Of a stretch of 64,000 nucleotides of DNA, positions 25,701 to 61,014 are shown in pieces. The notes below the pieces were generated by a model. That model saw nothing but the letters and a program-made list of their open reading frames with translations. It was not told where the DNA came from and searched no databases. The DNA is from Paragordius varius (lineage: Eukaryota > Animalia > Nematomorpha): assembly GCA_964247055.1 (NCBI GenBank), contig OZ176058.1, forward strand, positions 3,410,001 to 3,474,000, written 5' to 3'. Numbering within the stretch: the stretch's first letter is position 1; every line of letters starts with the position of its first letter. Made by a program: the position numbers and the translations under genes.

Positions 25701-28700
25701 TGAATTAGGATCCAGACGAGCAGGGACAGGACCAGCTACCGCAACTGCTTATGGCAACGCTGCCGAGGGAAACCCCTATAACTACAGTAATATATTATAT
25801 ACAGACAAAATGTAATACGCTAAATATTTGTTTACAAAAGAACAACCAACCATACGTTTTTAAACTTTATTTTTCCAACATAATTATTTTAATACAATCG
25901 TAATAATATTATTGTTTTCCAATCTACATCTCTTCTCTATTTCATACTTTGCAATTTATTTAAATTAATGTAAAATATTTCAATTAAGTGTTAAATACGC
26001 ATATTTTCATCTTGTTTAAGAAAAAAAATATTTGTCTTTTATAATGGTAAATAACGGATTGGTTATGTTTTGTGATAACAGTCGTTAAAATCCGTAAGAT
26101 AGCGATAAAGGAAAATTAAATAGAATTAAATGAAGTATAAATATTAAATTCTATTTAATTTTTCTTTATCGTTAGATTACGGATTTTAACAACTGTTATT
26201 TGTCTTTTTCTCTTCAATTTTTACTGTATTATCTTATCATATCATATCAAGGTATGAATAATGCCGCAAACCCGTATATGCCAGCCTCTCAAAATAACTA
26301 TTATTGGAATAATTCAAAAAGTCCCATGTCTCCGACCTATTTAGGACAAAATGGGGCATTCGCCCAGCAATCCAGTTTTTTGCCTAATAATAACAATAAT
26401 TATATAAATAATAACCAATCATCTTCAACTAATAATGCCTTTAACAATTCAAATGCCGCCAACCCAGTCAATTATTTTAATAACCATGGGGCGGCCGTCA
26501 ATGGTGGTACAAACGGAATGTATTATGATTACATGCAGGGTATATATACATATATACCATTTACAGTTTAAATTCACCCTCGAACAATTCTAATTCACCC
26601 TTGAACAATTCAAATTCAAAACCCTTCAACAATTCTATTAACCCTATAATAAATTATGCGTTTTTTTATATTAAAAATTACTTTTATTTTATAATATTTT
26701 TATACAACGAAATTCTGGTTAAAATTAATATAATGCTAAATAATAAACTATGTCGTAAAATATATTTAAACTTAATGGTGAGTTATATTATCCCGAAAAC
26801 AGATAATTTATTTTTAGGGTGAATTAGAATTGTTTAATGGCGAATTTGATTTGTTTTGAGGGTGAATTTAAATTGTTTGAGGGTGAATTCGAATTGTAAA
26901 TGGTATATCACTCATTGAAATTAAAATTATGTGAGTTATCCTTCGATCCCTAAAACTATGCAAATTTCTATCATAGCTGTCAGCTCTGAACTGTCGAATT
27001 TAACATATTCACATTAATGTTTGTCAATTCACATGATTTTTGGTTAATTGGTAACAGAGTAAATATCATTTCGGTAATCAACAATAAATACTTGAAAAAT
27101 TACAATATTTTCCTCTCTTACAACATTAAATTTTAATTAGTTATGGAGACAAAGTTTGTTTTATCTCATACGCTACTGTAATACCAATTGGCAAATAATC
27201 ATTTGAATCGACCAACATTAAAGTGCATACTGTGCTTTCACCTAATTCCTAAAACAATTTAATTACCCTTCAATAATAGGAAAAAAGAACTATAAGTCAT
27301 TTATTTTATATACATTCAAAATTTTTGTTTTTAAGTTACAAATATTTAAATTTTTGACTTTAATGCCGAATTTTATGATCACAAGGGTAAATTATAGATA
27401 ATCAAAATAATAATGAGTCAATAATTTTGGGGGATCATTCTATGTATTACTAACAAATTCTTTCACTATTCAAATGATTATTATTGCAGTAATATTGAAT
27501 CTAAACAGGCAAAATGTGAAAACCAAAGGATTTTTTTTTGTTTGGACTTTAAAATGTCCAATAGGGATAAAATTGTTAACAACATACTCAATTATACATT
27601 TTACAACTGTAATGTGCAAAAATCAGGATATAAAAAAGTATGGTTGTTATCTTAATTTAGTTAGATTTTGTCTGTTTAATTCAATTTTAACTTCAAATAA
27701 GCCTTTGTATTTATATTACCGCGATATATTTCTATAGGTTATGAGTATGGCAATGGCTTAAATAATAATTATGCTAGTAATGGAAAGTACCCTTACAATA
27801 CAACCGATTTTGAATACGATGAATATGGACAACAGTATATATTAAATTTTTATATCAAACTTATTTTTTTCTGGCTCTCTTGTTTAAATTATTAATTTGA
27901 TTTACTAAATACAATTAGAAAAGTATTGATATTATAAAAAACATTAAAAGACAAATGTTTTTATCTTTTTTTTCTTTTAGAATATCAGTCAATGTTTTAA
28001 TTTAACAATTGATGTAAAAATCATACGAGGTTGTAAAATAAAACAATAATTATACGGTTTTCTTTTCTGTATGCTATGAGCTCCTTTAAATATTACTTTA
28101 ACTTTAACCCAGTAAGCGGAAAACGCCATCTTTATAGTAATTATAAAAGATTTTATGGAGATTATATTTTTAGCCTACCTTTGCAATTAGAAGTCATGCA
28201 ACCGATTGTAGTTATATTAAGCCAATTATCATATCTCCTTTTGATCCATCAGCCATGATGGGGCTTATATAATTAGAAAATCACAAAAATTTTTCCTGGC
28301 CTAAGTTTGCTCTTTTCTCTTTCACCATCTATAATTGGTCTAACCTCTTAAAATACTCAGTGACAGTGTTTACCCGTGTTCATTATGTGTGACTGATGAG
28401 TCCACAACAAGGACGAAACGCGTCTCACACTATGACACGTAATAAACACTGTTCTCTTTAAATTTTCGTTTCATAAAGCCACCTATTGCTTGATAGGGAC
28501 TACTATGAATTCTAATTGCAAAGGTAGGCTAAGAAAATAATCTCTATAAAATGTTTTATATTTAACTTTAATATCCAACAAAAATTGAAATTATACGGAA
28601 CGTAAAAATTAAAAGACTAATATTTTTTTCCAAAAGACAATCTTATTTTTTAAATCTTGATTTATTTAACTCTAAATAATCGCTTTCGTTTGCAAAAATT

Positions 28701-30340
28701 AGAGATGTTTGTTAGTAATGCAAATATTTATTTATTTAAAATTGTAATTTTATAGTTTTATAGTTTTATAGGAAGTTAAGGTTTGAGCACGGTATTTTGT
28801 TTTACCGTAAAAATTAAAATTATACGGACAAAAGTGTAAAAATAAGACAAATATAAAACCTTAATTTTTCTCATATTTATTTAGTTACAATCGTAACTAT
28901 AGAATTTATTGTGTTAGTTCCATATATCTATTTCACACTTTGCCATTTAAAACAATGTACATTGAAATAAATTTTGATTAAAAAAGTACGGTTGCCTTTT
29001 AGAAAAACATATTTGTCTTCATATTTTCACGTTTTGTCCGTATAATTTGAAATTTTACTGTATTCGTAAAATTCAAATTTTTTCATTAATTTTATTAATA
29101 TATATTTTTTTAAATATCATAATTAGGGGTTATAGCGTAACTTCTCCATCAAATTTTGTATCCAGAAATGCTTATGGAAATACGACAGGAATCGAAACAT
29201 ATGTAGACGAATTTGGATTTGAAAGACCCGTTTTTAATAATAATACTAACGCCACGACGAATCATAATAGTATGGATCTATATATACCATTTACACTTAA
29301 ATTCACCCTTGAATAATTCACCCTGGAACTATTCAAAATAACCCTAAAAATAAATTGTGTTTTCAGGCTAATATAACTCATCATAAACATAAATCTATGA
29401 CATAGGATATATTATTTATTAAAATATAAAAAATATAGGTAGTTATTAATATTCGAAAAAACTTACTTTATTTTAGGGTGAATCGGAATTGTTCAAGGGT
29501 GAATTTGTCTGTAAATGGTATATAAAAATATATAATAGCAAATAAGTAAACGATTTCAAACTATTTGCCATTATGATATAATAGTATTTTAGGTTCATAT
29601 TTTATATTATAAGTTTATACGGTAAAAATTGATATTATAGAGACAAAGATGTTTTAAAAGACAATTTTTTTAAAAAAATGTCATCTAATTCATAGTATAT
29701 ATTTATCAGATATACCATATCATTACAAAGGTGAAATGATAATTGAGTCTGCTAACTATTTAAATCTGTTTTCCTTATTATGCCGCCAAAATAATGAATT
29801 ATATTTAAAAAACTAAATTTAATACAATATGGATATCAATAAAAATATTTGTTTTTTTAGATTTTACGTGTTGCCTCTATAATTACAATTTATAAGGTTA
29901 AAGTACTATTAACTAATAAACTTTGTTGTTTTCCTAGCTAAGATTGGGGTCGATTTGTCCCTATTTTGCAAATTCACCCGTAAATATTATTTTAAATTCA
30001 CCCTTAAACAATTAAACCTCAACTTAAAAATAAATTATATGTTTTGAAAAGCAAAATACACTTATATTTTTTGATATTTTTATGAAGAAATTTCGTTTAA
30101 AACCTATATAATATCGAAAAAATTAAAACTATATGGAAATCTTATCAATATTGAGTTAAAATATCCCCAAAACACATAAATTATAACTAGGGGATTCCAA
30201 AATGTTTCGACGGGTAAATTAAATGGCATATTTAAATTTTTTATCTGCATTTTTTAGGGGAACCCAATAAAAATTACATTGTTCAAACCGCTGAAGGCTC
30301 TGATCCACAATCTAACATTAATACAGTTTTAGGGGAATAA
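16716..30340 (+). CDS. ~1096-aa protein: S/T/N-rich N-terminus, long central coiled coil (myosin-tail-like heptads), N/Y/G-rich low-complexity C-terminus
   Basis: Exons 16716-17118, 18481-19214, 20378-20832, 23021-23162, 23385-23513, 24060-24437, 24524-24727, 25127-25241, 25709-25786, 26252-26539, 27738-27834, 29127-29269, 29938-29979, 30258-30340. All GT-AG, phases consistent, total 3291 nt ending in TAA. Coiled-coil exons are K/E/L/Q-rich (ESELAELKSAKAALQ, LKELENETYVKELSLRDRIEELEYEL). Start ATG is inferred and the family is not recognised. Confidence 0.85.
19948..20345. repeat. Tandem array (3 full + 1 partial, ~110-120 bp units) of the MITE-A right arm
   Basis: Unit TTTAAACAAGTA(T/C)(A/G)GTTGGTTGTCTTTTGAGATAAAAAA...TTGTCCGTATAATT(A/T)CAA..TTACTGTA starts at ~19948, 20060, 20177 and 20293. 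Confidence 0.85.
21270..21760 (-). pseudogene. Probable highly decayed Penelope-like RT fragment in intron 3 of the coiled-coil gene
   Basis: Minus-strand translation across stops and frameshifts gives, in the expected order, LPK*SIPTDVKQ (cf. SFDVKSLF), QNYLFLFN*K (cf. QNYFQFNGK), YMEY (cf. YMEYFE) and LTVEKNEIDILPILD..INRDINNK (cf. FTVEKE...LPFLD..I.R). No intact YVDD motif. Confidence 0.45.
26029..26208 (-). mobile_element. Short tail + inverted-arm insertion with 12-bp target duplication (Penelope-like architecture), nested in a MITE-A
   Basis: TATTTGTCTTTT (26029-26040), 34-nt unpaired segment (26041-26074), arm 26075-26131, 11-nt spacer, inverted arm 26143-26199, TATTTGTCTTTT (26197-26208). 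A related tail+arm sequence is at ~9898-9966 and the duplicate copy is at ~44390-44565. Confidence 0.65.
26557..26903. mobile_element. MITE family B (TA-flanked, CCATTTAC...GTAAATGG termini)
   Basis: TA|CCATTTACAGTTTAAATTCACCC...GGGTGAATTCGAATTGTAAATGG|TA with repeated AATTCACCC(T/C)TGAACAATTC subterminal units. Other copies at ~1545-1790, 12846-13080, 29287-29518, 29970-30230, 33042-33270, 44947-45260, 47760-47975, 48425-48670 and 51510-51740. Confidence 0.85.
28097..28571 (-). mobile_element. Hammerhead-bearing inverted-arm insertion (Penelope-like pLTR derivative) with left arm mostly deleted
   Basis: TTTAACTTTAA at 28097-28107 and 28561-28571, 29-nt unpaired tail (28108-28136), left-arm remnant 28137-28197 that is the reverse complement of ~28505-28566. 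Complete version in the duplicate at 46390-47089. Confidence 0.65.
28364..28451 (+). ncRNA. Minimal type-I hammerhead ribozyme
   Basis: Stem I GTGTGA (28387-92)/TCACAC (28425-30), core CTGATGA (28393-99), stem II GTCC-acaacaa-GGAC, GAAA (28415-18), palindromic minimal stem III ACGCGT, GUC cleavage triplet ending at 28424. Stem I extends via CAGTGTTTA/TAAACACTG and CGTGTT/GACACG. Confidence 0.92.
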
Positions 30341-32482
30341 TTTTTCAAAACGCATTTCAATTTTTTAGTTTTCAAAATTCATATTAATTTTGATATATAT
30401 TATACCAATTTTTATTTTAATACTCGCATTTAGACAATTGATTTTTAATAACTATTTTTTATTACTAATAGTTTATTTAGAATTTGGTAAAAATTATATT
30501 TTATTACATTTTGTGTTTTATAGTACTTAGAGTTAATATATATTTATATTGAATTTTGAAATATTTTTAAAAATACAGTATGTACATTTATTCGGGCTAA
30601 TTCACAGTATAGTTGAATCTATTGACAACACAGAAGTGTATGGAAGAATATGTACAAAATGTTGTGATTAAACAATTTTTTCCAATCTTACATAACTTTG
30701 TTTTATTTGATTATGGACAACATTTGTTTTATGACACACGCTCCTGTATTACTAATTGGTTAACAATACTGTGAATAAGCCTGGATAAATAAGCAAATCA
30801 TGATATTTATTTATAATAATTCTATCCGGTTTTTGTGCAAAACTTATTTTTTATTTTATACATTCAAATAAATAAATATTAACATTTTTTACGATGAAGC
30901 ATATTAAAAAATTTAAATTTACAACGTCTACAATGGTAAAATTAATATTATACAGACATATAAAACTTAATGACAATAATTTGTAAAAAAGACAACTATA
31001 TTTTAATGAAAGTTAATTATTCTGACAATGAACCATTAAATTACATTGTAACGGACACTTAAACCTATATTTCCCATTTTGCGACAAATAGTAAGTTTTT
31101 CATTAAAATATGGTTGGTTGTCTTCAAAAAAAGTATTTGTCTTTTAGTTTTTACGTTGTGTCTTTAAGTTTTTATTTAATGTATTATTATAACAACTTTT
31201 AATATTTGAATCATGCCCTGTAAAGTTTTTTTGATATTCGGCCAACTCGTAAAAGTTGATCAATAAAATGAATAAACGACATATATATGTTGGCAACATA
31301 TATCATTAACTCACTAAACTTTCTTTAATTGTCGCGTTGACATTTTGGGGTAGTTTTTTACCTAAGATCTTTATTTAGTAAACAATATTAACCTTGTTTT
31401 GTTTTAAATTTAATTATCAAACCCCATTCTCCTGCATTAGTTAGACAATCTTATAGTTTTTAACTTCATCTAGAGTCCAAATTCAGATAATTCCAAATCA
31501 CGACTGGGCAAACAGCTGAAGTAAATTAATAAATATCGATTGCTGGTAGATTGTAATCTAAAAATTTCCAAATTTAATTGTTTATAATTATATGGCGGCG
31601 AACAGAGATATGATTTTTTTAAGATACTTTTTAAATTACACCCTTAAAACGCTAAAAAATATTTTGTTAAATTTGGCTTTATGCTAATAGTGTATTTTAT
31701 GACATATAAAAATTATATAGCTTTGAATCTTAAAACAACCTAAAAGGTCGTGTGTTGAAATTGAAGTTTTAATTATTTTATATTATGTGAATAGTTTTTA
31801 GCCATTAGTAAATGTAGATATCAGCCAACAGTTTGAGTAAGCTGAAATATTTAAATATTTTACATTTTAGTGTACCAAATTGTTAAAAACTTCGTTAAGT
31901 TGCAAAAAAAAACTCTTCCAAGAAATTTAAAGAAATGCTTTAATAAAATCGTACACTTTTCCAAAATATTACCAGAAGCAACATTTATATTGAATAAATT
32001 GGGAAATATATAATTTGTTTTTACAGCTTGCATTTACAAAATAATTATAAATTAAGTTTTCGTTGTAAACTGAAAAAAACTGACTTTGGAGATATATTTC
32101 TGATAATAACAGCCTGCCGTTTAAGATATTCTAGTAACCCGCTTTGTATAACTAGGAATTGCTGAGTCATTTAAACAGAATTTTATCACCTTATATAAAA
32201 ACAAATGAGATTTAGAAGACAAAATCAGCTATGTCAACACAAGTGCAAATAGTAGCTCTGCCTATTACAAACAATTTCTTATAATTGAACGTTAAAAATT
32301 TATAACAATTATTATATTATATAGAATATGAAGATTTTTTCGAAGAAAAAATCATTTTAAAAGAATATTATTGCTTTGTTAACGGTATACTAATCATCAG
32401 CTTAAAAAAAGTATATAAAGACGAGAGAAATCTAAACTGCCACAATTAATAATTTTGCATTTTTTATCACTCAAAAACAAAA

Positions 32483-34659
32483 ATGAATGTTAATTTGGGT
32501 TTTTTAACCTACGCTATCCTATTCAGTCTTTTTGCCCTTTTTACTGTTAAATGTGAAATCAAAGAATCCGATAAACCTGCGGCAGTCGAAGCCTGTGTCA
32601 AACATTATTCAACGTAAGTCCTTACAAGTCAATAGTTAGAGTTTTTTGAAAAAAAATATAAAAATTTAAGGGTAATTATTATTTTTATGATTAAAAGACA
32701 ACCCCACCATACTTTTTAATATTTAAATTTTTACTTACAGAGTTATGTATCCTTTATTTTATCAAAAATCTAATTTTTTTCCCCCTTAAATGGGTATAAA
32801 TATTTGGTAAATGATGGAAAAAACAAGAGTTCTATGGTATTTCTTATACTTTTTCGATGAAAATGATATTTGCTCTTGTTTTTTCCATTCTTTGCCAATA
32901 TTTATATCCATTTGATGAAAAAAATAAATTATTGATAAAATAAAGGATACATGGTATATACATGGAAAATTGACGGACAAAACGTAAATATATAAAGGCA
33001 AATATTTTTATCTAATAGACAATCATACTTTTTTACAGATAGCATTTACAGTAATTCACACTCGAACAATTCAAATTCCTAAAATAAGTTATGTCTTTTT
33101 AACGCTTTATTTTGAAATATTTTTAAAAAAAGAAATTTGTTTAAATAATGCTGAAAAAATAATAAACTATGTAGTAAAAATATACTAAAATTAATAATGA
33201 TCCCGAAAACACATAATTTATTTTTAGGGGGAATTTGAATTGTTCAAGGGCCAATTTGAATTGTAAATGGTATATAAAGTTTCCCATTTATAATTTTACA
33301 AATATAAACTCTATTTCATAATTTGCAATTATAAACAATTATTTATATTTCAGCAATCTGAGGTTTAAAAAGTTTAATCTTTAAAAAAAATATATGTCTT
33401 TAATTTTTACGCCTTATCCGTATTTAATATTAATTTTATTGTAAATTAGTGTGGTACTCACTAAAATTTTTAAAGGGCGGAAAAATTATATTTTAATCTT
33501 GTCTCAAGAGCTGTGGACAATATAATATGGGGATAAAATTTTATAGTTGTTTAATAACACATTCGTAGATGTTTATACTCAATAATAAATATCCATAAAT
33601 TTCTATAAAAAAGGCCCTATGCGGCCAGTGGGCCGCGGTTTGAGTAAAACTAATTATTTTAATTTTATACGCTTACAAAGTCTCCTGAGAAAGAGATATA
33701 TAATTGCATATAAATAATCCTTGAAATAAACGGAAGAATTAAAAATGTTGAGTTTATCAATTTTTTACGTATTTTTATTACGTATGTATGTAGATTTGGA
33801 TTCGGTAAACCTAAAATGTGCGCTAAGAATGCTGCCCGGTCAGCTTCCGAAAGACAATTTAAAAAGGTTGGAGGACTTAACAAGCAATGGACTTGTTTAA
33901 AAGATCCCCTTGGTTTAAAGAAAAAAATGTGCATGTGTGGAAAGTATATAATTTGTTCATATTTTTTATACAGTTCATAAAAAAAACTATTAAAAAAATG
34001 AAGTAAAAATATATGAGCTAGTGTCGTCTACATTTTTAGACTTAATAAATTTCTCTAGCAAAGATAAAATGTTTAATGATTGATTAATTGAGGATTATGT
34101 TTCATGGTCCCCATAATTATAAACTATAAGTGAAATGTTAAAATTACTTGCTACCTATAAACTTTTAAAATCTTTTTTTTGGGAACCTAAGGTAAAAATT
34201 GTATCCATAACATAATCCTTAAATAGTAAAAGAATGTCGCATTCGTTAAAAAATATCATGGATTTTACATTAAAAGCAACTCTTTTATATATTTTTTTGA
34301 ATTAATAGTTTTTTTTTATTATTTAAGCTATGTTAATTTAATGATTCAACTAATAATTAAGTTTAAGTAAAGGATTTAATCTTGTTATTGCTTTGATAAT
34401 GAAAAAATCTTTCCATTTCTGTAAGTTATTGAGTAAAAAAAAATTGTCCTTTTAAAGGAAACGTATTTTAAGTCGATATACTAGGCATAGATGAATTTTC
34501 TGTCTGTTTAACGGTTTAATTTATAGGCAAACAAATATTCTTATTTTAACATCTTTAATTAATTTGAGTAAATTAATTAATAATTCATACTTTTAATAAT
34601 TACTATTTAGGAGTTCGAACCCGCGTGAATCTGATTTTATAGAAGTGCACGAATGTTAA
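32483..34659 (+). CDS. Small secreted, basic, Cys-rich protein (~109-112 aa), paralog a
   Basis: Exons 32483-32613 (GTAAGT donor), possible 9-nt microexon 33354-33362, 33794-33943, 34611-34659 (TAA). Protein: MNVNLGFLTYAILFSLFALFTVKC|EIKESDKPAAVEACVKHYST(NL)RFGFGKPKMCAKNAARSASERQFKKVGGLNKQWTCLKDPLGLKKKMCMCGKSSNPRESDFIEVHEC. Hydrophobic signal-peptide-like N-terminus and 6 Cys in the predicted mature part; structure conserved in the paralog. Confidence 0.8.
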
Positions 34660-40202: not shown

Positions 40203-40243
<41 letters not shown>

Positions 40244-43500: not shown

Positions 43501-46500
43501 GTTAGGATCATTATTATTGGCTTAAAATTAGTACAATTAAAATATTTTCCATTCCCCTTTGCTTCCTTTTGGCCCATAAAACTTCTATTACCTGTAAATG
43601 CTATCTACAAACCGTAACGCCGTTTCGAATTTATTTTAAATTTTATAGTTTGGGTCAAATTCAAAAATATGCATTTTTTAGCATTTTAGTCACATGACTC
43701 ATAAAATTCAATAAATTTGTAATCGTAATAAAATCCCCATCTCAAACTTTTTCGCAAATCGCTAATACCATAGTATAATATAGTATATTATGGTTAATTT
43801 GTTTATAATTAACTTTAAAAGTTTTAAAATTACATTATCTATAATATTGAAATCGCCTGTAATCGGGTTTTGGAGCTAACCCCATTACGGAGTAAAAAAT
43901 TTAAAACTGTAATATAAGTTTTCATGTACTACCAAAGAACACTGTTTGATTATTATTAAATTTTAAAATTATTTTTCTAACTATGTATACCCAAAAATAT
44001 GTTTTTGTATAAAGCTGATGCTCTCTTAAACTAATTTTTTTTCGTTTGTTTGTAAATCAGGATCTAGACGAGCAGGGACAGGACCAGCTACCGCAACTGC
44101 TTATGGCAACGCTGCCGAGGGAAACCCCTATAACTACAGTAATATATTATATACAGACAAAATGTAATAAGATAAATATTTTTTGTACAAAAAAACAGCC
44201 AACCATACTTTTTTAACCTTAATTTTTCTTTAAAAATTATTTTAATACAATCGTAATAAAATATATTTTTGTCTGTATGTTTCCAATCTACATCTCTTCT
44301 CTATTTGATACTTTGCTATTTATTTAAATTAATATAAAATATTTCAATTAAGTGTTAAATACGCATATTTTCATCTTGTTTAAGAAAAAAAATATTTGTC
44401 TTTTATAATGGTAATTAACGGATTGGTTATGTTTTGTAATAACAGTTGTTAAAATCCGTAAGATAACGATAAAGGAAAATTAAAAATGAAGTATAAATAT
44501 TTAATTCTATTTAATTTTCCTTTATCGTTAGCTTACGGATTTTAACAACTGTTATTTGTCTTTTATGTTTTTACATTCGTTTATTCTCTTTAATTTTCAC
44601 TGTGTTAACATATCATATATATCAAGGTATGAATAATGCCCCAAACCCGTATATGCCAGCCTCTCAAAATAACTATTATTGGAATAACTCAAAAAGTCCC
44701 ATGTCTCCGACCTATTTAGGGCAAAATGGGGTATTCGCCCAGCAATCCAGTTTTTTGCCTAATAATAATAATCAATATATTAATAATAATAATCAATCAT
44801 CTTCAACTAATAATGCCTTTAATAATTCAAATGCCGCCAACCCAGTCAATTATTTTCATAACCATGGGGCGGCCGTCAATGGTGGTACAAACGGAATGTA
44901 TTATGATTACATGCAGGGTATATATATATATATATATATATATATACCATTTACAATTCAAATTCACCCTTGAACAATTCGAGTTTACCCTTCAACAATT
45001 CTATTCATCCTATAATATATTATGCGTTTTTTAGGATTAAAAATTACTTTTATTTTATAATATTTTTAAAATATGAAATTCTCTGGTTAAAATTAATATA
45101 ATGCTAAATAATAAACTATGTCGTAAAATATATTTCAACTTAATGGTGAGTTATATTATCCCGTAAAACACATAATTTATTTTTAGGGTAAATGTGAATT
45201 GGTCAAGGGCGAATTTGAATTGTTCGAGAATGAATTTGAATTATTTGAATTTTAAATGGTGTATCATTATTTAGCGCATTGAAATAAAAATTATTGTGAG
45301 TTTTCCTTCAATCCCTAAAAATTGTGCAAATTTCTCTCATCACTGTCAGCTCTGGGCAGTCGAGTTTAAGAGTATACACATTGATGTTGGTCAATTTACA
45401 TGATTTTGGTTAATAATTGGTAACACAGTAAATAGCATTTCGGTAATCACAAATGCTTGAAAAATTACAATTTTTGCCTATCTTACAACATTAAATTTTA
45501 TTTAGTTATGGACAAAGTTTGTTTCATACGCTATTGTAATACCAATTGGCAAATAATCATTTGAATCGACCAACATTAATGTGCATACTGTGCTTTCACC
45601 CATTTCCTAATACAATATAATTAACCTTTAAATAAAATAGGGAAAAAAACTCTAAGATGTCGAATTCTATGATCACAAGGGTAAAATATAGATAATCAAA
45701 ATGATAATGGGTCAATATTTTTGGGGAAAACATTCTATGTTTTACTAATTTTTTTGTACAACTTGTTTACTATTCTTATGATTATTATTGCAGTAAGAAT
45801 TGAATTTACACAGGCAAAATGTGACCAAAAAGAAATTTTTCGAAAACTAACCATATCTAAAAAATTTTTAGTTTTGACTTTAAAATGTCAAATAGGGATA
45901 AAATTGTTAACAACATACTCAATTATACATTTTACAACTGTAATATGCAAAAAATTAGGATATAAAAAGTATGGTTGTCGTTTTAATTATTTAGATTTTG
46001 TCTGTATACAATTTTTACTTCAAATAAGCCTTTAATTTATATTACCGCGATATATTTCTATAGGTTATGAGTATGGCAATGGCTTAAATAATAATTACGC
46101 TAATAATGGGAAGTACCCTTACAATACAACCGATTTTGAATACGATGAATATGGACAACAGTATATATTAAATTTTTATATCAAACTTATTTTTTTCTGG
46201 ATCTCTTGTTTAAATTACCAATTTGTTTTACTAATAATTAGAAAAGAGACAAATGTTTTTATCTTTTGTTTTTTTAGAATATCACTCAGCGTTTTAATTC
46301 AATTGATGTAATCATCTACGAGGTTGTAAAATGAAAGAATAATTATACGGTTATCTTTTCTGTATGCTATTGGCTCCTTTATATATTGCTTCAACTTTAA
46401 CCTATAAGGCGGAAAACGCCATCTTTATAGTAAATATAAGATTTTATGGAGATTATTTTCTTGGTCTACCTTTGCAAATAGAAGTCATAGTAGTTCCATT

Positions 46501-48785
46501 CAAGCAATAGGTGGATTTATGAAACAAGAATTTGAAGATGACAGTGCTTATTACGTGTCATAGTGTGAGACGCGTTTCGTCCTTGTTGTGGACTCATCAG
46601 TCCCACTTAATGAACACGGGTAAACACCGTCAGTTAATAGTTTCTATATATATACTGAGTATTATAAGATTTAAGACCAATTATAGTTGGTGAAAGAGAA
46701 AACAGAGAACTTTGGCCCGGAGAGGGCAACCGATTGTACTTATATTAAGCCAATTACCATATCTCCTTTTTATCCATCAGCCAGGATGGGGCTTATATAA
46801 TTAGAAAATCACAAATTTTTGCCGGCCCTAAGTTCTCTGTTTTCTCTTTCACCAAATATATTAAAATACTCAGTGACAGTGTTTACCCGTGTTCATTATG
46901 TGTGACTGATAAGTCCACAAGGACGAAACGCGTCTCACACTATTACACGTAATAAACACTGTCCTCTTTAAATTCTCGTTTCATAAAGCCACCTATCACC
47001 TATTGCTTGTTAGGGAGTACTATAACTTCTAATTGCAAAGGTAGGCTAAGAAAATAATCTCTATATAATGTTTTTATATTTAACTTTAATGTCCAACTAC
47101 TGAAATTATACGGAACGTAAAAATTAGACTAATATTTTCTTATAAAAGACAATCTTTTAAATCTTGATATTAATTAGAAATAATCGTTTTCATTTGCATA
47201 AAAAACCAGAGATGTTTATTGGTAATGCACATAATATAATTTAAAATTGTAATTTACAGGAAAAGTTAAGGTTTGATAAAGCACGGTATTTTTTAGTTTT
47301 ACGGTAAAAATTAAAATTATACGGACAAAAGTGTAAAAATAAGACAAATATAAAACCTTAATTTTTCTCATATCTATTTAGTTACAATCGTAACTATAGA
47401 ATTTATTGTGTTAGTTCCATATATCTATTTCACATGCCATTTAAATTTTGATTAAAAAAGTACGGTTGTCTTTTAGAAAAACATATTTGTCTTCATATTT
47501 TCACGTTTTGTCCGTATAATTTCAAATTTTACTGTATTTGTACAATTTCAATTTTTTCATCAATTTTTAATATGTATTTTTCTGAATATACACGATTAGG
47601 GGTTATAGCGTAACTTCTCCATCAAATTTTGTATCCAGAAATGGGTATGGAAATACGCCAGGCATTGAAACATATGTAGACGAATTTGGATTTGAAAGAC
47701 CCGTTTTTAATAATAATACTAACGCCACGACGAATCCTAATAGTATGGATCTATATATACCATTTACATTTAAATACACCCTTGAACAATTCAAAATAAC
47801 CCTAAAAAAATTGTGTTTTCAGGCTAATATAACTCATCATCAACATAAATTTATGACAAAGGAAATTTCATTTATTAAAATATGTAAAATATACGTAGTG
47901 TTTAATATTCGAAAAAACTTACTTTATTATAGGGTGAATCGGTATTGTTCAAGGGTTAATTTGGGCTTTAAATGGTATATAAAAATATATAATAGCAAAT
48001 AAGTAAACGATTTCAAACTATTTGCCATTATGATATAATAGTATTTTAGGTTCATATTTTATATTATAAGTTTATACAGTTAAAATTATTACAGAGAAAA
48101 AGATGTTTTAAAAGACAATTTTTTTAAATAATGTCATCTAATTCATAGTATATATTTATCAGATATACTATATCATTACAAAGGTGAAATGATAATTGAG
48201 TCTGCTAACTATTTAAATCTGTTTTCCTTATTATGCCGCCAAAATAATGAATTATATTTAAAAAAACTAGATTTAAATAATATGGATATTAATAAAAATA
48301 TTTGTCTTTTTAGATTTTACGTGTTGCCTCTATAATTACAATTTATAAGGTTAAAGTACTGTTAACTAATACACTTTGTTGTTTTCCCCTAGCTAAGATT
48401 GGGGTCGATTTGTCCCTATTTTGCAAATTCACCCGTAAATATTATTTTAAATTGACCCTTGAACAATTGGATTTCAACCTAATAATAAATTATATGTTTT
48501 GAAGAGCAAAATTCACTTATTTTTTAATATTTTTAAAAAGAAATTTCGTTTAAAACCTATATAATATCGAAAAGAAAAACTATGTGGAAATTTTATTAAT
48601 ATTGAGTTAAATTATCCCCAAAACACATAAATTTTCAAAATGTTTTGAAGGGTGAATCCCAAGTGTAAATGACATTTTAAATTTTTTATCTTCATATTTT
48701 AGGGGAACCCAATAAAAATTACATTGTTCAAACAGCGGATGCCTCTGATCCACAATCTAAAACAAATACAGTTTTAGCGGAATAA
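40599..48785 (+). CDS. 5'-truncated paralog of the coiled-coil gene (last 11 exons, ~566 codons, frame intact)
   Basis: Exons 40599-40740, 40943-41071, 41641-42018, 42107-42310, 42714-42828, 44061-44138, 44627-44917, 46064-46160, 47600-47742, 48393-48434, 48703-48785. Lengths are identical to copy 1 except one extra codon, splice sites are kept, and most changes are synonymous. Exons 1-3 are not duplicated; an in-frame ATG lies at 40618. Confidence 0.72.
46563..46606 (-). ncRNA. Minimal type-I hammerhead ribozyme, intact core
   Basis: Reverse complement reads GTGGGA CTGATGA GTCC acaacaa GGAC GAAA CGCG TC TCACAC, with one stem-I mismatch. Confidence 0.85.
46900..46940 (+). ncRNA. Hammerhead ribozyme copy with a mutated core (probably inactive)
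   Basis: GTGTGA CTGATAA GTCC acaa GGAC GAAA CGCG TC TCACAC; the conserved G8 is changed to A and loop II is shortened. Confidence 0.75.
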
Positions 48786-50940: not shown

Positions 50941-53133
50941 ATGTATGTTAATTTGGGTTTTTTAACCTACGCTATCCTATTCAGTCTGTTTGCCATTTTT
51001 ACTGTTAAATGTGAAATCAAAGAATCTGATAAACCTGCGGCAGTCGAAGCCTGTGTCAAACATTATTCAACGTAAGTCCTCACAACAAGTCAATAGTTAG
51101 AGTTTTTTGAAATAAAATATAAAAATTTAAGACTAATTATTATTTTTGTGATTAAAAGACAACCCCACCATACTTTTTAATATTTAAATTTTTACTTACA
51201 GAGTCATGTATCCTTTATTTTTTCAAAAATCTAATTTTTTTCCCCCTTAAATGGGTATAAATATTTGGTAAATGATGGAAAAACAAGAGTTCTATGGTAT
51301 TTCTTATACTTTCCGATGAAAATGATATTGTTAATGCTCTTGTTTTTTCCATTCTTTGCCAATATTTATACCCATTTGATGAAAAAAATAAATTATTGAT
51401 AAAATAAAGGATACATGATTGTATATACATGGAAAGTTGACGGACAAAACATAAATATATAAAGGCAAATATTTTTATCTAATAGACAATCATACTTTTT
51501 TACAGATAGCATTTACAGTAATTCACACTCGAACAATTCAAATTCCTAAAATAAGTTATGTCTTTTTAACGCATTATTTTGAAATATTTTAAAAAAAAGA
51601 AATTTGTTTAAATAATGCTGAAAAAATAATAAACTATGTAGTAAAAATATATTTCTAAAATTAATAATGATCCCGAAAACACATAATTTATTTTTAGGGG
51701 GAATTTGAATTGTTCAAGGGCCAATTTGAATTGTAAATGGTATATAAAGTTTTCCATTTATAATTTTACAAATATAAACTCTATTTCATACTTTATAAAT
51801 AAAAACAATTATTTATAATATTTCAGCAATCTGAGGTTGAAAAAGTTTAATCTTTTAAAAAAAATATATGTCTTTATATTTTTACGCCTTATCCGTATTT
51901 AATATTAATTTTATTGTAAATTAGTGGTACTCACTAAAATTTTTAAAGGGCGGAAAAATTATATTTTCTTGTCTCAAGAGCTGTGGACAATATAATATGG
52001 CGATAAAATTTTATAGTTGTTTAATAACACATTTGTAGATGTTTATACTCAATAATAAATATCCATAAATTTCCATAAAAAAGACCCTATACGACCAATG
52101 GGCGGTAGTTTAAGTAACACTAATTATTTTAATTTTATACGTTATATAAAGTCGCCTGAGCGAGAGATAATTGCATATAATTAATCCTTGACATAAACGG
52201 AAGAATTAAAAATGTTTAGTATTATTTATATCAAATTTTTATTACGTATTTTTATTTATATGTATGTAGATTTGGATTCGGTAAACCTAAAATGTGCGCT
52301 AAGAATGCTGCCCGGTCAGCTTCCGAAAAAAAATTTAAAAATATTAATCTAAACAAGCAATGGACTTGTTTGAAAGATCCCCTTGGTTTAAAGAAAAAAA
52401 TGTGCATGTGTGGAAAGTATATAATTTGTTCATATTTTTTATACATACAGTTAATAAAAAACTATTAAAAAAATAAATATAAAATTTACAAGCTAGTGTC
52501 GTCTATATTTTTAAACTTTATAAATTTCTCTAGCAAAAAATAAAATGTTAAATGATTGATTAATTGAGGATTATGTTTCATGGTCCCCATAATTATAAAC
52601 TATAAGTGAAATATTAAAATTACTTGCTACCTATAAACTTTTAAAAATTTTTTTTTGGGAACCTAAGGTAAAAATTGTAACCATAACATAATCCTTAAAT
52701 AGTAAAAGACTGTCGCATTCGTTAAAAAATATCATGGATTTTACATTAAAAGCAACTCTTTTATATATTTTTTTGAATTAATAATTTTTTTGAATTATTT
52801 AAGGCTATGTTAATTTAATGATTTAACTAATAATAAAGTTTAAGTAAATGATTTAATTTTGTTATGTTGCTTAAACAAATGTAAAAATCTTCCAATTAAA
52901 AGAAAAATAAAACTGTGCTTTTAAAAGAAACGTATATTTAGCCGATATATACTAGGCATAGATGATGAATTTTCTGTCTGTTTAACGGTTTAATTTATAG
53001 GCAAACAAATATTCTTATTTTAACATCTTTAATTAATTTAAGTAAATTAATTAATAATTTATACTTTTAATAATTACTATTTAGGAGTTCGAACCCGCGT
53101 GAAGCTGATTTTATAGAAGTGCACGAATGTTAA
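50941..53133 (+). CDS. Small secreted Cys-rich protein, paralog b
   Basis: Exons 50941-51071, possible microexon 51827-51835, 52270-52416, 53085-53133 (TAA). Same 6 Cys; the central segment reads EKKFKNINLNKQ instead of ERQFKKVGGLNKQ. Confidence 0.8.
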
Positions 53134-55403: not shown

Positions 55404-57580
55404 TTTGTAAGAATTTTTTGACGGAGATAATTTTCAAAATCATCCACTGTATCATGATTTTTCACAATGATAGTGTCTCATTTAGTTTTTCTTTTATCCA
55501 ACATAAATAAATGTGGGGGAAGGATGTTTTTCCCTCAAAATCCTCATTTTTAATCCTTGAAAGTATATACACATCTGCGTAAGCCACAGAATTCTTCTGG
55601 TTTTCCTGATCACACAGACTGTACGAAAGAAGACCAGTTCTATCAACAACATCGCAGGCTCGCCATTCAGGACTTTGTTCGTTTTTCACCATTATGCGTT
55701 GGTATATTAAAACGCACGACGTGGACGGGGTGCGTCTAAGACTGTTGTTTTTGTGTTAATCCAGGTCGGGGGTGTTTGGGAGACTCGTTTAAAGAGTAGT
55801 TGGAAGGGGGTTTCCTTTGTGGTAGCGTGAATGGAATTACGGTAAGACCATAAAGTAGTATTAAAAGCTTCCTCCGGTGTATTAATATAATTTTTGATTT
55901 TCCTATACTTGCCCTTTAGGGTCCCTACTAACCTTTCTACCATTCCATTACTTTTAGGATGATAGAGGGTTACCCTCACGTGCTTAATTCCCAAGTTTGT
56001 CAGGGTTGATGTAAAGTACAAATTATTGAAATAAGAAGCGTTATCACTTTCTACCGTCTTCGGAAACCCAAACCTGGCAAAGGTTTCCTCGAGTTTGTGA
56101 AATATATTTACCGAATTAACCCGTTTTAACATAAACCCTTCCGACCATTTTGATGAGCTATCAATCAACAAAAACCAAAAATACCCGTCAACTGGTCCCG
56201 CTATATCGATGTGCAAACGCTCCCATATCGCAGCATTTGGATCCCATTGCTAAGTGGTTTTTTTACTAGGCTTGGCTTGTTTCCTTGGCATGAGCTACAT
56301 TGACTGTACCTTCTTACCAATTGTTCTCTAATTTTAGCTAAAAACAGGTAAACCTTGCCATTACTTTCATCGTTTCTACATTATTATGCCCGCTGTGTAA
56401 ATAATTGACCATATTCGCCTGTCTTTCCGGGATGATGATTCGATCGTTCAAACTTAGCAATCCATATTGGTACAAAATTTCTCCTTTACGGTTGGTGAAC
56501 TCAGCCAACTCAACATCACTCCAATCTTGATAATTAATAGCCTTGATTACCTTTGGCAAAATTTTATCCTTAACTGTTTCTCTTCGGATCTCATCTCGAC
56601 TTAAATGAACGTTATGACAATTTCGGAACCTAAGATGTCTCGTTACCATGTAGTCTCTATCAATTGTGTCTACATTATCTTCACCGGGACATCTTGAAAG
56701 TAATTGGCTCTATTTTTCGGACCCGCCTGATAACTAAATTAAAAATCAAAATCATTCAGTCAGTTAACCCATCTTAAAACTTTCGCATTCTGAATTTCTT
56801 TCAAATTTCTATCCCTATTTATCAAGCTAACCAGTGGTAAGTGGTCTGTCAAAATTTCAAACTTTCTACCATAAACGAAGTTATGAAACTTTTCTAATGC
56901 AAAAACAATAGCCTTTAATTCCTTTTCTATCGTGTAGTAGTTCAATTCTGCAGTGCTACCTTTTCTTGAACCATAGGCAATGGGTTTCCTTTCACCATTT
57001 ACAACATGAGATAAAATATCAAACCTATATCTGAGGCATCGGTTTCAATTACTAACTTTGTATCCGGATTGTATGGTGTTAAAAATATTATTTGTTCACT
57101 TAAAATTTCCTTTGCTGCTTTCCAACTTTTCACGTGTTTTTCCGACGAGTTCCATCTGACGTTCTTACTCGTTAAACTATGTACACTTACAATCAATTGA
57201 AGCTTGGGTATAAATCTTTCATGGAACGTTAAAAATCATAAAAAACTTCTTAAAGATTTTTATCCACAGGTTTTTTAAAATCATTGATTGCTTTTATTTT
57301 ATTCTTGCATGACTTATACCTTTATTACTTATTTCAAATCCCAGATCACTTATCGAAGGTTCACCAGTTTTTATTTTATCTTTTCTTAATCTAAAACCTG
57401 CTAATTCTACCCGATTTAAAACATTATTAAGATTTATTAAATGTTCCTGTTCAGATTTGCCAGTTACTAAAACATCATCTAAATATAAGTTGAGTGGGTG
57501 ACGACGAAGTGTTGTTAAATAAGATTCGTGTGTTAACGTCGTGTGAATAATGAAAGAAAATAAAAATAAATTTATTATAG

Positions 57581-57614
57581 ACTCAAATTTTCGCCCAATG
57601 GCATCATCAGGAGT
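57581..57614 (-). ncRNA. Minimal hammerhead-like motif (left arm)
   Basis: Reverse complement of the 58149-58182 motif. Confidence 0.55.
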
Positions 57615-58148
57615 TGTTAAAAGAAAAAACTTAAAATAAAGTATAACCAAGAAAAAAATATAAAATGAAATTAAATGTGAGACAAATCAATGCTTATAAA
57701 TTGATATAATAGACAAAGGAAAGTAACATAAAAGAAAACCGTTATAATCTTGAGCGCATGTGCAATATATTTTTTATAAGAACATAAATATATCTACATT
57801 AGACAAAACAAACAAATTATAAAAAATAAAAAATTTAAGTAATATCAATGCTGTCACAAACCAAAATTTTTATAAAAAACCATAATATTTTTATTCCAAA
57901 AACTTTATACAGCATTGATATTACTTAAATTTTTTATTTTTTATAATTTGTTTGTTTTGTCTAATGTAGATATATTTATGTTCTTATAAAAAATATATTG
58001 CACATGCGCTCAAGATTATAACGGTTTTCTTTTATGTTACTTTCCTTTGTCTATTATATCAATTTATAAGCATTGATTTGTCTCACATTTAATTTCATTT
58101 TATATTTTTTTCTTGGTTATACTTTATTTTAAGTTTTTTCTTTTAACA

Positions 58149-58182
58149 ACTCCTGATGATGCCATTGGGCGAAAATTTGAGT
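58149..58182 (+). ncRNA. Minimal hammerhead-like motif (right arm)
   Basis: ACTC CTGATGA T GCC attg GGC GAAA ATTT GAGT: 4-bp stem I, intact core, one extra U before stem II, loopless palindromic stem III (AAUU), UUU cleavage triplet. Weaker than the 28.4-kb ribozyme. Confidence 0.55.
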
Positions 58183-61014
58183 CTATAATAAATTTATTTT
58201 TATTTTCTTTCATTATTCATACGACGTTAACACACGAATCATCTAAATATGCACAAGTGCCGGGGCAACCTTTTATAACATGGTCCATGACCCGTTGGAA
58301 TATTATTGGTGCTGTTGACAGTCCGAAAGACATCAGCGGTAAAATTCCTTGTGAGTTGCAATTGTTAGAAGGTGTTGTTCTTTAGTTATGGGTATTTGTA
58401 GATAGGCATATTTCAGATCAATCTTACTGAAAACTTCTTCGCCAATCTTACTTACTAAATCATCAAACGTTGGAATGATATGAGAATCCTCAGTCAGCCA
58501 CTTGTTGATCGTAACTCTATCGCTACAAATTCTTACCTCTCCATTCGCTTTGAGCACATTGACGGTGGGCGTGGCCGATGTCAGAGGTGTAAGGTTGGGA
58601 TCTATTGGCTCCAAAATGTCTAACTTTTGTAATCTTAGCAATTCGTTTTCAACTCTCGCTCTTAGGGGAAACGGTACTCGGCGACAAAACCAAACTTTGG
58701 GGGAGGCATTGGGTGCTATATGAATTGTAACTGGCTCAATAGCCTAATTCCTTTTTAAATAGATTAGGAAAACTTTCAATAATTTTATCAAGTTTAAGAA
58801 AATTAATTCTTACCTTAGGAATGTCGATGTTGAATCTTGTGATCTAATCTAAGCCACAAATGAGCGGTGCCTTTTGACATTTTTTCTTTCAATCCACAAC
58901 ATTCTGCGTCCCCCAAGTTTTGCCCATTGATTTTCACTGTGACTGTTGTTACGCCCAGGAAAATATATTTTCGTACGACTATGGATTTGTGATTGACCAA
59001 CAGTTTGAAGTCTTGGATCTATAGGCGGTTTATGGTCTAATGATTGTTGCATTTTTTCATTGGGATATCGTTCTTGGAAAAATTGATCAGATTTTTGGCT
59101 CTTTTGATTAGATCGTCGCCCCTGTTTTTGACTGGCTGATGTGTCTTTATATCTTTTAAAAGAAGAACCTTTTGTATTATGAATCGGCGTAGAGAATAGT
59201 ATTGAGAGTTTGGGTGTACATATAAAGGACAAAACACATTAAAACGATAAGTATTATTGAATGACATAGGAAACGTTACAGAAAATATAATTACAGTCAT
59301 GTATTTGATTAATTGCCTAATATTCGTGGAAAATTGTGTTTGTTTAATCTTTTTAGATAGTTTTACTTAAACTCCCCATATTCCATAACTTATATATTTC
59401 ATATGTTAAAAAGTTGTCATAACAATATAAAAATAATTATGACAATAACGCGTACGAAACAGAAAATCCGCTTTAACACAAAAGACACAAAACATTTATC
59501 CATAAAAATCATTATTTTCTAAATGAGTTATGAAAAAAATTATCTTAAACTATTAAACTTATGATGAATATAATTCAATTTAGGATATATATAAAGCTAC
59601 CAATACTTGATAATCAGTAGTAATTTTAAAAAAGGTAAAGAAGGAATACAAAGGAGATTCAGTAAGAATCCGGGAATGGTTTATTGATACAAATAATTTT
59701 AAAAAAAATATTTGAAAAGAGATTTTAATAAAAATAATTTTGTTAAAAAATTATAATAAAATACATGTACCGAAATATTTTTCATATAACACAGTTTAAA
59801 AATATTTATCTTACCAATATATTTTGGAATATATATAATATAAACGCTTGATTACTTACCGTGTTTTATAGTATATTGTTGGGTAGATTCTTTACCAATA
59901 TCTTTCTGCATCAATTCACATGCAATAGAGGGGATACTTTGCGTTGATCTCAAGGGATAATTGAATGTATTTGTTGTTTTAACCAGTTTACGGGTTGATT
60001 AAAAGTTTCATTGTACATATTATAAGATATTGGCCGTTCATCTGACAAAAAATTCTCACTCAAAGTACTATAATGCGTCTAATAATCCGAAAATAAAATT
60101 TTTCTGGTTGTTCGTCAATATAATATATCTTTGGTTACATTGTGCCATGCTGTTCACTTCCAAATTAAAGCCAAATACTAAACCTAAATTTTGTCCTTGT
60201 TCCTGCATACTATATCCATTTTAAATTAATTTTAAACCTCGTCTCAAACATTTATCTGACATAAATGAATATGTGAGTTTCATGTGCAAATTTATTTTTG
60301 CTTTTCACCCCAAATATGTTATTAATTTTTTTAAATTATATTCCCATAAGTAAAAATAAATAATAATTACATATAAGTTTTCCATGTTTTTATTATACAA
60401 TAAAACGCAAACGCGTCTTTTCTACAATTTACACAATTTTCAAATATTTTTGTAATTTCATATTGCGCCCAAATATTATATTAAGTTTTCTTGATATAGT
60501 AGGTTATCTACGACTCCTTAAACATTTGCAACATACTAAAAATAATAATTGTTATAAAAACTTATAGGTTACCGGATTTATATGACATTAATATTTACTT
60601 CGAAATTTTATATCATAGTAAATGCAATAAATTTTAAAACATGGTTATAACTTTGGTAAAAAAATAGTTGTTTGGCACAAAGATTTTGCTTTCTGTAATC
60701 TGAAGCATAATTAAAAAATTTGTAATTTTTATTCAATTGAGGTTATAAAAAATTTAACTATAAGAAATTAATAATTTAAACAAGGATATTTATTTTCGGA
60801 AAAGTTTGCGATACTATATAGCAATTCTAAACTTATAAAACTTACATTAAACCTTATAAAACTAATTTCTTTAAAGACTTTTTGTTTCCTAACTGTCTAA
60901 TGTTCCTGTCGTAGTTTAGAAAAGTTTAAAAATACAGGTGTTTTCCTATATTGTCTGAAGACATGGTAAATATAAATTTTAATAAACATTTTTTTATGAA
61001 AATATTATTGCTTT

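Follow-up and report, generated by a model that had tools for sequence, protein, structure and literature searches.

Penelope-like elements (PLEs) leave a characteristic insertion signature. Their standard features are an inverted, 5'-truncated copy of the element and a 30-40-bp tail on one end (PMC8557442), and the combination of these features with a hammerhead has already been published for PLEs. In elements with a C-terminal GIY-YIG domain (EN+ PLEs, of the Penelope/Poseidon, Neptune or Nematis type), 5'-truncation is strong, the inverted copy is often head to head, and the targets are AT-rich. In an in-vitro study with purified PLE protein, both strands were cut and extended, two adjacent start sites on the RNA delimited the tail, and initiation did not need homology to the target (PMC11167929). 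Pairs of minimal hammerheads (min-HHRs) on opposite strands, 100-700 bp apart, have also been reported (PMC4209133). And retrozymes have been proposed to be passengers of PLEs (PMC7229834; bioRxiv 10.64898/2026.07.22.740005).

We analysed a 64,000-nucleotide stretch of the Paragordius varius genome (the window) and found the PLE signature at three sites (Table 1): 26029-26208, 28097-28571 (with a complete counterpart at 46390-47089), and 57474-58250. Each has an 11-13-bp direct repeat, a one-sided tail of 30-36 nt, and two inverted arms. Every feature that the initial annotation described is present: the target duplication, the tail, the inverted arms, and the overlap of the direct repeat with the end of an arm, which we measured at 3-4 nt. 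The arm sequences of the three families are unrelated, as had been supposed; the hammerhead core is the sole similarity between families. Dispersed repeat families of the 110-Mb genome include all three sites. Because every site belongs to a repeat family, chance is excluded. The common layout is a genuine PLE insertion signature, but an ordinary one, and EN+ PLEs share the strong truncation, the frequent head-to-head copies, the tail on one end, and the AT-rich targets. All three sites are very probably retrotransposition products of PLE machinery.

Table 1. Features of the three insertions, their paralogues, and the host element, in window coordinates
Feature	Position	Strand	Remarks
Family 1 left 12-bp target-site duplication TATTTGTCTTTT	26029-26040		direct repeat
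Family 1 tail-bearing copy, unit positions ~345-454	26041-26147	-	tail at 26041-26074 (34 nt)
Family 1 tail-less inverted copy, unit positions 362-419	26143-26200	+	
Family 1 right 12-bp duplication TATTTGTCTTTT	26197-26208		4-nt overlap with arm end
Family 2 deletion derivative, exact 11-bp duplication TTTAACTTTAA at both ends	28097-28571		
Family 2 hammerhead, complete core	28372-28448	+	HH9 36.3 bits, E 8.8e-6; min-HHR descriptor
Family 1 paralogue in second copy of the 18.4-kb segmental duplication	44393-44566		same flanks, 92% identity
Family 2 left duplication TTCAACTTTAA	46390-46400		10/11 match to right TTTAACTTTAA
Family 2 full unit of ~413 nt, tail-bearing	46401-46820	-	tail at 46401-46430 (~30 nt)
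Family 2 hammerhead in tail-bearing copy	46545-46621	-	HH9 30.5 bits; one G-A mismatch in helix I
Family 2 tail-less, 5'-truncated inverted copy	46822-47082	+	unit positions 101-390, without 140-169
Family 2 right duplication TTTAACTTTAA	47079-47089		
Host of family 3 insertion: decayed LTR-retrotransposon pol, RT then integrase	55710-58659	-	
Family 3 left 13-bp duplication ATCATCTAAATAT	57474-57486		YLDD codons of host pol, minus strand
Family 3 tail and 332-nt copy of PLE 3' end	57487-57854	-	tail at 57487-57522 (36 nt)
Family 3 tail-less 386-nt copy of PLE 3' end	57855-58240	+	
Family 3 min-hammerhead-like motif	58153-58182	+	min-HHR descriptor; mirror copy at 57581-57610, minus strand
Family 3 right 13-bp duplication ATCATCTAAATAT	58238-58250		3-nt overlap with arm end

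Family 3 is the dead-on-arrival stump of an autonomous PLE (RT and GIY-YIG). It had been taken for a coding-less family, but what remains of the coding element after heavy 5' truncation is its final 332-386 nt, which form the arms, and the tail-less right arm includes 23 codons from the end of the RT/GIY-YIG ORF (57857-57925). Longer family 3 copies continue into an ORF with RVT_1 (E 4.7e-12; L058:1-1569). The initial annotation had suggested matching the arms to copies attached to RT plus GIY-YIG ORFs, and for this family such copies exist. The GIY-YIG domain of L058 scores 17.3 bits, under the cut-off of 22.6, and its motif is visible with a CCHH signature; RT followed by GIY-YIG with CCHH is also the arrangement in EN+ PLEs. 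The protein-atlas clusters nearest to the ORF combine HTH_animal, RVT_1, and GIY-YIG, and this domain combination suggests that the RT is PLE-type. The genome contains at least 93 matches to the family 3 protein; the longest open frames reach 868 aa, and several matches are arranged as head-to-head pairs.

The family 3 copy in the window interrupts the host pol at its YLDD box (the host also has a frame change near 58333). In searches with the left and right flanks, the overlap between the two hits is exactly 13 nt, both at C9:3578026-3578038 and in more than 30 other copies of the host element. These paralogous empty sites prove the 13-bp duplication. The two arms (332 nt, 54 nt apart) are 100% complementary, and assemblers have trouble with long palindromes (PMC8557442). 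So we also considered that this palindrome might be a fold-back chimera from assembly or sequencing, and that the other two sites might be chance inverted repeats in AT-rich DNA. We give this idea practically no credence. This filled site is present in three copies on the contig, which are 98-99% identical and carry independent substitutions, the exact 13-nt overlap at the empty sites fits a real insertion, and the architecture is repeated at dozens of unrelated loci from three families, each with its own duplication. The 54-nt "spacer" between the arms does exist, but it is not a separate component: it is the first 54 nt of the 386-nt tail-less copy.

The copies at 26 kb and 44 kb, and those at 28 kb and 46 kb, are not separate insertions but paralogues within one 18.4-kb segmental duplication. 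In family 2, the insertion at 28097-28571 is the 46390-47089 insertion without unit positions 96-332: these are missing from its left copy, while its right copy spans 100-390. At 46390-47089, the arms match in blocks of 76, 80, 58, and 39 nt at 84-93%. The family 2 unit is about 413 nt (GC 35%), and its copies include junctions between unit end and unit start, 5'-truncated solo copies, and inverted pairs. Partial tandems of up to about two units are found in six loci (L002-L006 and L012).

For family 1, the unit is about 450 nt (GC 27%), with a tandem junction in L082. There are partial tandems of up to about two units in L082, L086, and L087, and composites range from 150 to 1086 bp. In the window copy, the 57-nt arms are 89% complementary and 11 nt apart; the stretch between them is present, as described, but it is an extra 5' part of the tail-bearing copy rather than a spacer. 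We also noticed that the family 1 paralogue at 44393-44566 is missing from the initial annotation.

At Rfam gathering thresholds, no match was found in the window. Permissive scans identified family 2 only, with two sub-gathering hits to the Rfam model HH9 (36.3 and 30.5 bits, E 8.8e-6 and 6.7e-4), and the Rfam hammerhead models had no match in the window's family 3 copy or in twelve family 3 loci. The published min-HHR descriptor matches 18 copies from family 1, 11 from family 2, and 9 from family 3, with 0 hits in 30 shuffled windows. For the two long insertions, which had been said to carry hammerheads, the evidence differs: sub-threshold HH9 hits for family 2, and the descriptor, not Rfam, for the hammerhead-like motif of family 3. 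Copies from families 1 and 2 that fit the descriptor have a type-I hammerhead with a complete core, a helix I of 6 bp, a helix II of 4 bp, and a palindromic helix III. For instance, in the hammerhead at 28372-28448, a palindromic ACGCGU replaces the helix III hairpin. In the hammerhead of the tail-less family 2 copy (46900-46940), the core is mutated, and in family 1 only the longer copies have a hammerhead, so that the window copy is without one. The family 3 motif consists of CUGAUGA, a 1-nt bulge, a 3-bp helix II closed by G-C, GAAA, a palindromic AAUU, and a 4-bp helix I. Like that of the Anolis element, the hammerheads here, including the candidate one of family 3, are minimal type I, and they lie 60-175 nt upstream of the 3' ends (PMC8557442, PMC11167929, PMC4209133). 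The family 3 motif differs from those of EN+ PLEs in its unusually short helix II, which has uncompensated changes in several copies. The hammerheads may have a role in mobility. By inspection, there is at most a mild excess of arm 5' ends near the cleavage site.

Families 1 and 2 fit the description of non-LTR retrozymes, as small, ORF-less, hammerhead-bearing units. The initial annotation's proposal of coding-less hammerhead families holds for these two: the longest ATG-ORF of a dimerised unit encodes 45 aa in family 1 and 51 aa in family 2. A non-LTR retrozyme has a type-I hammerhead in every unit, and its units measure about 150-450 nt. Like the non-LTR retrozymes (PMC7229834), families 1 and 2 have a low GC content, a length of about 410-450 nt, a single type-I hammerhead whose helix III is palindromic, partial tandems, and duplications of over 4 bp. 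However, non-LTR retrozymes form long tandem arrays, while families 1 and 2 are mostly dispersed truncated monomers and inverted pairs, with no long arrays in the sampled loci. Also, non-LTR retrozymes have canonical ribozymes with a loop-loop contact, while families 1 and 2 have the minimal PLE kind. Another defining property of non-LTR retrozymes is that they are expressed as self-cleaved, circularised RNA (circRNA). At 53 sampled sites of these two families, we found no PLE ORF within about 1.5 kb and no PLE-protein match inside the loci, and by coordinates, none of the family 1 or 2 hits was adjacent to a PLE-ORF hit among the 40 candidates scored per search. With the family 3 PLE and one other, partial PLE as references, families 1 and 2 showed no sequence similarity to an autonomous PLE. 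Neither the window nor the sampled loci contain an empty site for families 1 and 2 (both paralogues in the 18.4-kb duplication are filled). We infer that the two families derive from a PLE and that they are moved in trans by PLE machinery.

The ends of the copies follow a simple rule. Of the 39 inverted pairs that could be classified in the three families together, 37 combine one tailed end with one short end, and none has two tails. For family 1 this holds for 21 of 21 pairs (the loci were chosen with a tail-containing query, which biases them towards at least one tailed end but not against two). In family 2, 12 pairs are tailed plus short, 1 is short plus short, and 4 are complex; in family 3, the counts are 4 tailed plus short and 1 short plus short. 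Outer ends are constant, while arm lengths vary from about 20 to over 400 nt. Head-to-head inverted pairs occur in all 3 families, tandem junctions in families 1 and 2, and many copies are solo 5'-truncated units without an inverted partner.

These insertions could be mistaken for MITEs or foldback elements, that is, for DNA transposons whose terminal inverted repeats are recognised by a transposase and which move by cut-and-paste with a duplication of fixed length. They too are small and non-coding, with inverted arms between direct repeats, and the window does contain symmetric MITE-like elements (such as 26552-26908 and 32745-32952). But fixed length, symmetry, and a constant duplication, which the initial annotation expected of true MITEs or foldback elements, are not what we see: copies are asymmetric, their lengths range from 94 to 1086 bp, and the duplications vary from 11 to 18 bp. 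A tail on exactly one end, arms that vary so widely behind constant outer ends, arms that cross tandem unit junctions, and the many solo truncated units also contradict this reading. Furthermore, family 3 is continuous with an RT/GIY-YIG gene, the 3' end of which makes up its arms, and none of 90 loci (0/90) contains a transposase ORF. A DNA transposon is therefore very improbable.

At the junctions, we found microhomology of 0-6 nt (mean 2.4 ambiguous nt per junction), and 14 of 32 junctions have at least 3 ambiguous nt, versus 10.8% expected. This differs from EN+ PLEs in vitro, where no homology is involved. We dropped a candidate "tailed end without microhomology" once the tandem continuation of the unit served as the reference. 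Microhomology is typical of LINE priming, and we considered that a LINE-type retrotransposon (with an APE or REL endonuclease) rather than a PLE might have produced these insertions by twin priming, as in L1 inversions. In twin priming, too, both nicked strands act as primers and inverted segments arise, with microhomology at the 5'-5' junction and duplications of more than 10 bp (about 10-20 bp). However, twin priming copies adjacent parts of one RNA and inverts a different, more 5' part, while here both arms come from the same 3' region. The poly(A) or simple-repeat tail is absent, and the enzyme family is different. A one-sided tail of 30-36 nt and minimal hammerheads are hallmark features of PLEs (PMC8557442, PMC4209133), and family 3 is continuous with a PLE ORF. 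We consider a LINE origin very improbable.

The data themselves show the anatomy of the insertions, the structure of the families, the empty sites, and the capacity of family 3 to code for protein. To explain how PLE machinery might give rise to this layout, we propose a double target-primed reverse transcription. The PLE endonuclease/reverse-transcriptase complex would make a nick in each strand of an AT-rich target, with 11-18 bp between the nicks, and element RNA would be reverse-transcribed from each freed 3' end, with about 2-5 nt of microhomology aiding the priming. On the first primer, synthesis would begin at the distal start site and give the copy with the 30-36-nt tail; on the second, it would begin about 30-36 nt upstream, in a looser zone, and give the tail-less copy. 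The two cDNAs, with variable stops, would then be joined 5' end to 5' end, which would leave a duplicated target, a single tail, and a pair of inverted arms that differ in length. For families 1 and 2, the templates are probably multimeric or circular RNAs, because the arms often cross the unit-to-unit junction. The short 3' ends are scattered here (at unit positions 369-428 in family 1), while the in-vitro study found one discrete short start site.

A 6-7-bp hairpin holds the short start zone of families 1 and 3 in its loop, and the tail contains the 3' strand of that hairpin. We considered that a common 3' hairpin might be a shared recognition element and rejected this: families 1 and 3 have a weak hairpin (z -1.7 and -2.0), and family 2 has none. 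More tentatively, the 37-of-39 rule and the 2-5-nt microhomology could reflect a single dimeric PLE particle that holds both 3' overhangs on one RNA, with start zones about 30-36 nt apart, so that a single template molecule would serve for both arms. We consider this possible but doubtful. In a test of one versus two templates by arm-to-arm identity, the arms are each other's best match only in L004 and in the window's copy of family 3. If the single-particle reading is right, it would provide a concrete and testable model of how PLEs, and the ORF-less units that travel with them, integrate.

Neither the one-tail rule nor the microhomology at the junctions points to a new class; both are small clues to mechanism. 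The three sites are clean examples of the PLE signature that can be verified independently; its marks are exact empty sites, outer ends that are constant, and inner ends that vary. For genome annotation, these elements mimic MITEs, and tools based on terminal inverted repeats will misfile them. Finally, two ORF-less hammerhead families and a coding PLE have the same signature in one genome, which gives structural support, from an invertebrate, to the proposal that animal retrozymes are passengers of PLEs.

At site 1 (26029–26208), site 2 (28097–28571, with its counterpart at 46390–47089) and site 3 (57474–58250), we found all of the features that the initial annotation had described: a direct repeat, a one-sided tail, and inverted arms. 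This shared layout is the published signature of Penelope-like elements (PLEs), which encode a reverse transcriptase (RT) and a GIY-YIG endonuclease. In PLEs, heavy 5' truncation, an adjoining inverted truncated copy, and a 30–40-bp tail, often at one end only, are standard (PMC8557442). Site 1 has a 12-bp repeat, a 34-nt tail, and 57-nt arms that match at 89%. At site 2, the two ends of the 11-bp repeat are identical in the 28-kb copy and agree at 10/11 positions in the 46-kb copy; the tail measures about 30 nt, and blocks of the arms are 84–93% complementary; positions 96–332 of the family's repeat unit are missing from the 28-kb copy. At site 3, the 13-bp repeat ATCATCTAAATAT lies on both sides of a 36-nt tail and arms of 332 nt, which are 100% complementary, with 54 nt between them.

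Site 3 interrupts a decayed pol gene of an LTR retrotransposon at its YLDD codons. We compared 300 nt of each flank to the genome, with the 13-bp repeat included in both queries. In over 30 copies of the host element, the left and right matches share exactly 13 nt; the best-matching empty site (C9:3577744–3578038 and 3578026–3578325) is 99% and 98% identical to the two flanks. These empty sites prove that site 3 was inserted with duplication of 13 bp of the target. (The host pol gene has at least 40 genomic copies, at 78–99% identity, and the copy in the window has a frame change near 58333 in addition to the PLE insertion.) We also looked for empty sites for sites 1 and 2 and found none in the window or among the sampled loci.

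The assembly comprises 110.6 Mb in 44 contigs, with about 25% G+C, and the window corresponds to C9:3410001–3474000. An 18.4-kb segmental duplication, with copies at 23.3–37 kb and 40.9–55.4 kb of the window (87–99% identity in blocks), carries the insertions of both family 1 and family 2. Because of this duplication, site 1 has a paralogue at 44393–44566, and the two copies of site 2 represent a single ancestral insertion rather than two events. The filled family 3 site also recurs at C9:3521437 and C9:3545940, with an empty paralogue at C9:3578026; this stretch of C9 is therefore a larger array of duplicated segments. The three filled copies of site 3 on C9 are due to later duplication of the host segment. 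The inverted structures are unlikely to be an assembly artefact: there are three filled paralogues that have diverged, and analogous loci number in the dozens.

Coordinates of features in the window and elsewhere in the genome
Feature	Location	Strand	Comment
Site 1 repeat TATTTGTCTTTT	window 26029-26040, 26197-26208		12 bp
Decayed LTR-retrotransposon pol gene	window 55710-59232	minus	RT then integrase
Symmetric MITE-like elements	window 26552-26908, 29268-29537, 44953-45223, 47772-47962		
Symmetric MITE-like elements, further group	window 32745-32952, 51197-51425		
Stem in families 1 and 3	window 57487-57560, 26041-26110	minus	
Stem in families 1 and 3	L072:1540-1611		
Longer family 3 copies	C9:1538540-1541156; C7:1531974-1534567; C8:2164838-2167551		
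PLE sequences near contig starts	C1:7357-9049; C2:7496-9144; C5:6670-8219; C4:9313-9619; C7:7716-8132; C28:8398-8814		
Further such PLE sequence	C3:14411682		L043-L045

Searching the genome showed that each site belongs to a dispersed repeat family, with 96 matches (from 286 first-look candidates) for family 1, 147 (from 159) for family 2, and 111 (from 119) for family 3. The only similarity between families is a stretch of 31–34 nt that families 1 and 2 share at their hammerhead cores. Two additional fragments of family 1 lie in the window, at 5177–5235 and at 9866–9979 (minus strand); the latter contains a junction from unit end to unit start.

Families 1 and 2 are hammerhead-bearing units and are indeed coding-less, as initially proposed. 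The family 2 unit is about 413 nt, and at many loci its end runs into its start, giving a circular permutation of the kind that partial tandems show. The family 1 unit is 450 nt (1607–2056 of the sampled locus L082) and has the same type of junction. In the dimerised units, the longest ATG-initiated ORFs are 45 and 51 amino acids for families 1 and 2, respectively, and none of 53 loci from these families (each about 3.3 kb) had a match to PLE proteins. Sampled copies of family 2 are 94–99% identical to each other; such copies, in family 3 as in family 2, are taken to be young. The window's family 2 insertion is old: it is about 88% identical to the sampled copies, and its own two arms share 82% identity.

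The family 2 motif has, by inspection, a complete hammerhead core with a helix I of 6 bp, a helix II of 4 bp, and the palindrome ACGCGU in place of helix III. Its scores against Rfam's hammerhead model HH9 are 36.3 and 30.5 bits (E = 8.8e-6 and 6.7e-4), which is under the gathering score. Longer copies of family 1 have an analogous motif with the palindrome ACUAGU; the window's copy is too truncated to contain it. A descriptor for minimal hammerhead ribozymes, written from the published description (PMC4209133), matched, within the window, the motifs of families 2 and 3 but nothing in 30 shuffles; among the family loci, it had 18, 11, and 9 matches for families 1, 2, and 3. In family 3, the motif shows a bulge of 1 nt following A9, G10.1-C11.1, a palindromic AAUU, and a helix I of 4 bp. 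Its helix II is just 3 bp, several copies carry uncompensated changes there, and no Rfam model matched the motif. We regard it as a plausible candidate hammerhead. The predicted cleavage sites are 60–175 nt upstream of the 3' ends, a distance comparable to that in the Anolis PLE (PMC11167929); in family 1 the predicted cut follows unit position 303, and in family 2 it follows position 252.

The overall interpretation in the initial annotation, of coding-less PLE-derived ribozyme families that resemble MITEs, is largely right, but family 3 is not coding-less: site 3 is the stump of a coding PLE. In longer copies, each of which consists of two inverted 5'-truncated copies, the arm leads into an ORF that encodes YVDD and a GIY-YIG motif (CCHH signature). 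A 523-amino-acid open frame (L058:1–1569) matches RVT_1 (E = 4.7e-12) and, weakly, GIY-YIG; the protein-atlas clusters nearest to it contain HTH_animal, RVT_1, and GIY-YIG. This protein has at least 93 genomic matches, with open frames of up to 868 amino acids and several head-to-head pairs. Of the PLE, the insertion in the window retains just the final 332 and 386 nt. The 54-nt "spacer" is the beginning of the longer arm, and this arm includes the ORF's final 23 codons. Separately, a family 3-type fragment followed by a second PLE (39–52% protein identity) lies about 7–9 kb from several contig starts. Together, these sequences resemble a subtelomere-like block of endonuclease-positive PLEs that the contigs have in common.

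Our census covers about 25–30 loci per family. Unit positions refer to single natural copies, not to a consensus; these references were extended to mimic the tandem junction, by its own first 25 nt for family 1, and by the natural junction and next-unit start of the same locus for family 2. Copies are 5'-truncated solos, inverted head-to-head pairs, or pairs with a tandem junction; total lengths are 94–1086 bp and target duplications are 11–18 bp. Outer ends fall into two classes, long (tailed) and short. Family 1 loci were picked with a tail-containing query, which favors at least one tailed end, but this bias does not explain why there are no double-tailed pairs. Junction ambiguity averages 2.4 nt and is at least 3 nt in 14 of 32 cases, versus 10.8% expected.

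Outer ends (unit position) and inverted pairs in each family
Family	Long ends	Short ends	Long+short	Short+short	Long+long	Complex
1	448-460	mostly 416-428, outliers 369-408	21	0	0	0
2	about 405-434	371-394	12	1	0	4
3	419-425	386-401	4	1	0	0

In families 1 and 3, the short 3'-end zone sits in an AC-rich loop of about 30 nt, closed by a stem of 6–7 bp whose 3' strand is inside the tail. The folding z-scores are weak (-1.7 and -2.0), and the stem is absent from family 2.

If these were MITEs or foldback elements, the asymmetric ends, the varying lengths of arms and duplications, the solo copies and tandem junctions, and the continuity of family 3 with coding sequence would not be explained, so this alternative fails. 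(The window does contain symmetric MITE-like inverted-repeat elements, which lack a one-sided tail, in contrast to the PLE-type insertions; one such family has subterminal repeats AATTCACCCTYGAACAATTC.) Twin priming by a LINE also fails: here, the same 3' region is copied in both arms, and poly(A) is absent. Instead, we infer that the insertions most likely arose when a PLE enzyme carried out double target-primed reverse transcription. Purified PLE protein cuts and extends both target strands, and it starts at two adjacent internal RNA sites, which bound the tail (PMC11167929). The enzyme would act on family 3 in cis and on the two ORF-less families in trans.

Paired minimal hammerheads on opposite strands, 100–700 bp apart, are on record (PMC4209133). 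Non-LTR retrozymes, which are small ORF-less mobile units that bear hammerheads, are known from many invertebrates (PMC7229834), and it was recently argued that they derive from PLEs and are non-autonomous (bioRxiv 10.64898/2026.07.22.740005). Insertions of the kind seen at the three sites are already known, and the three families add further members.
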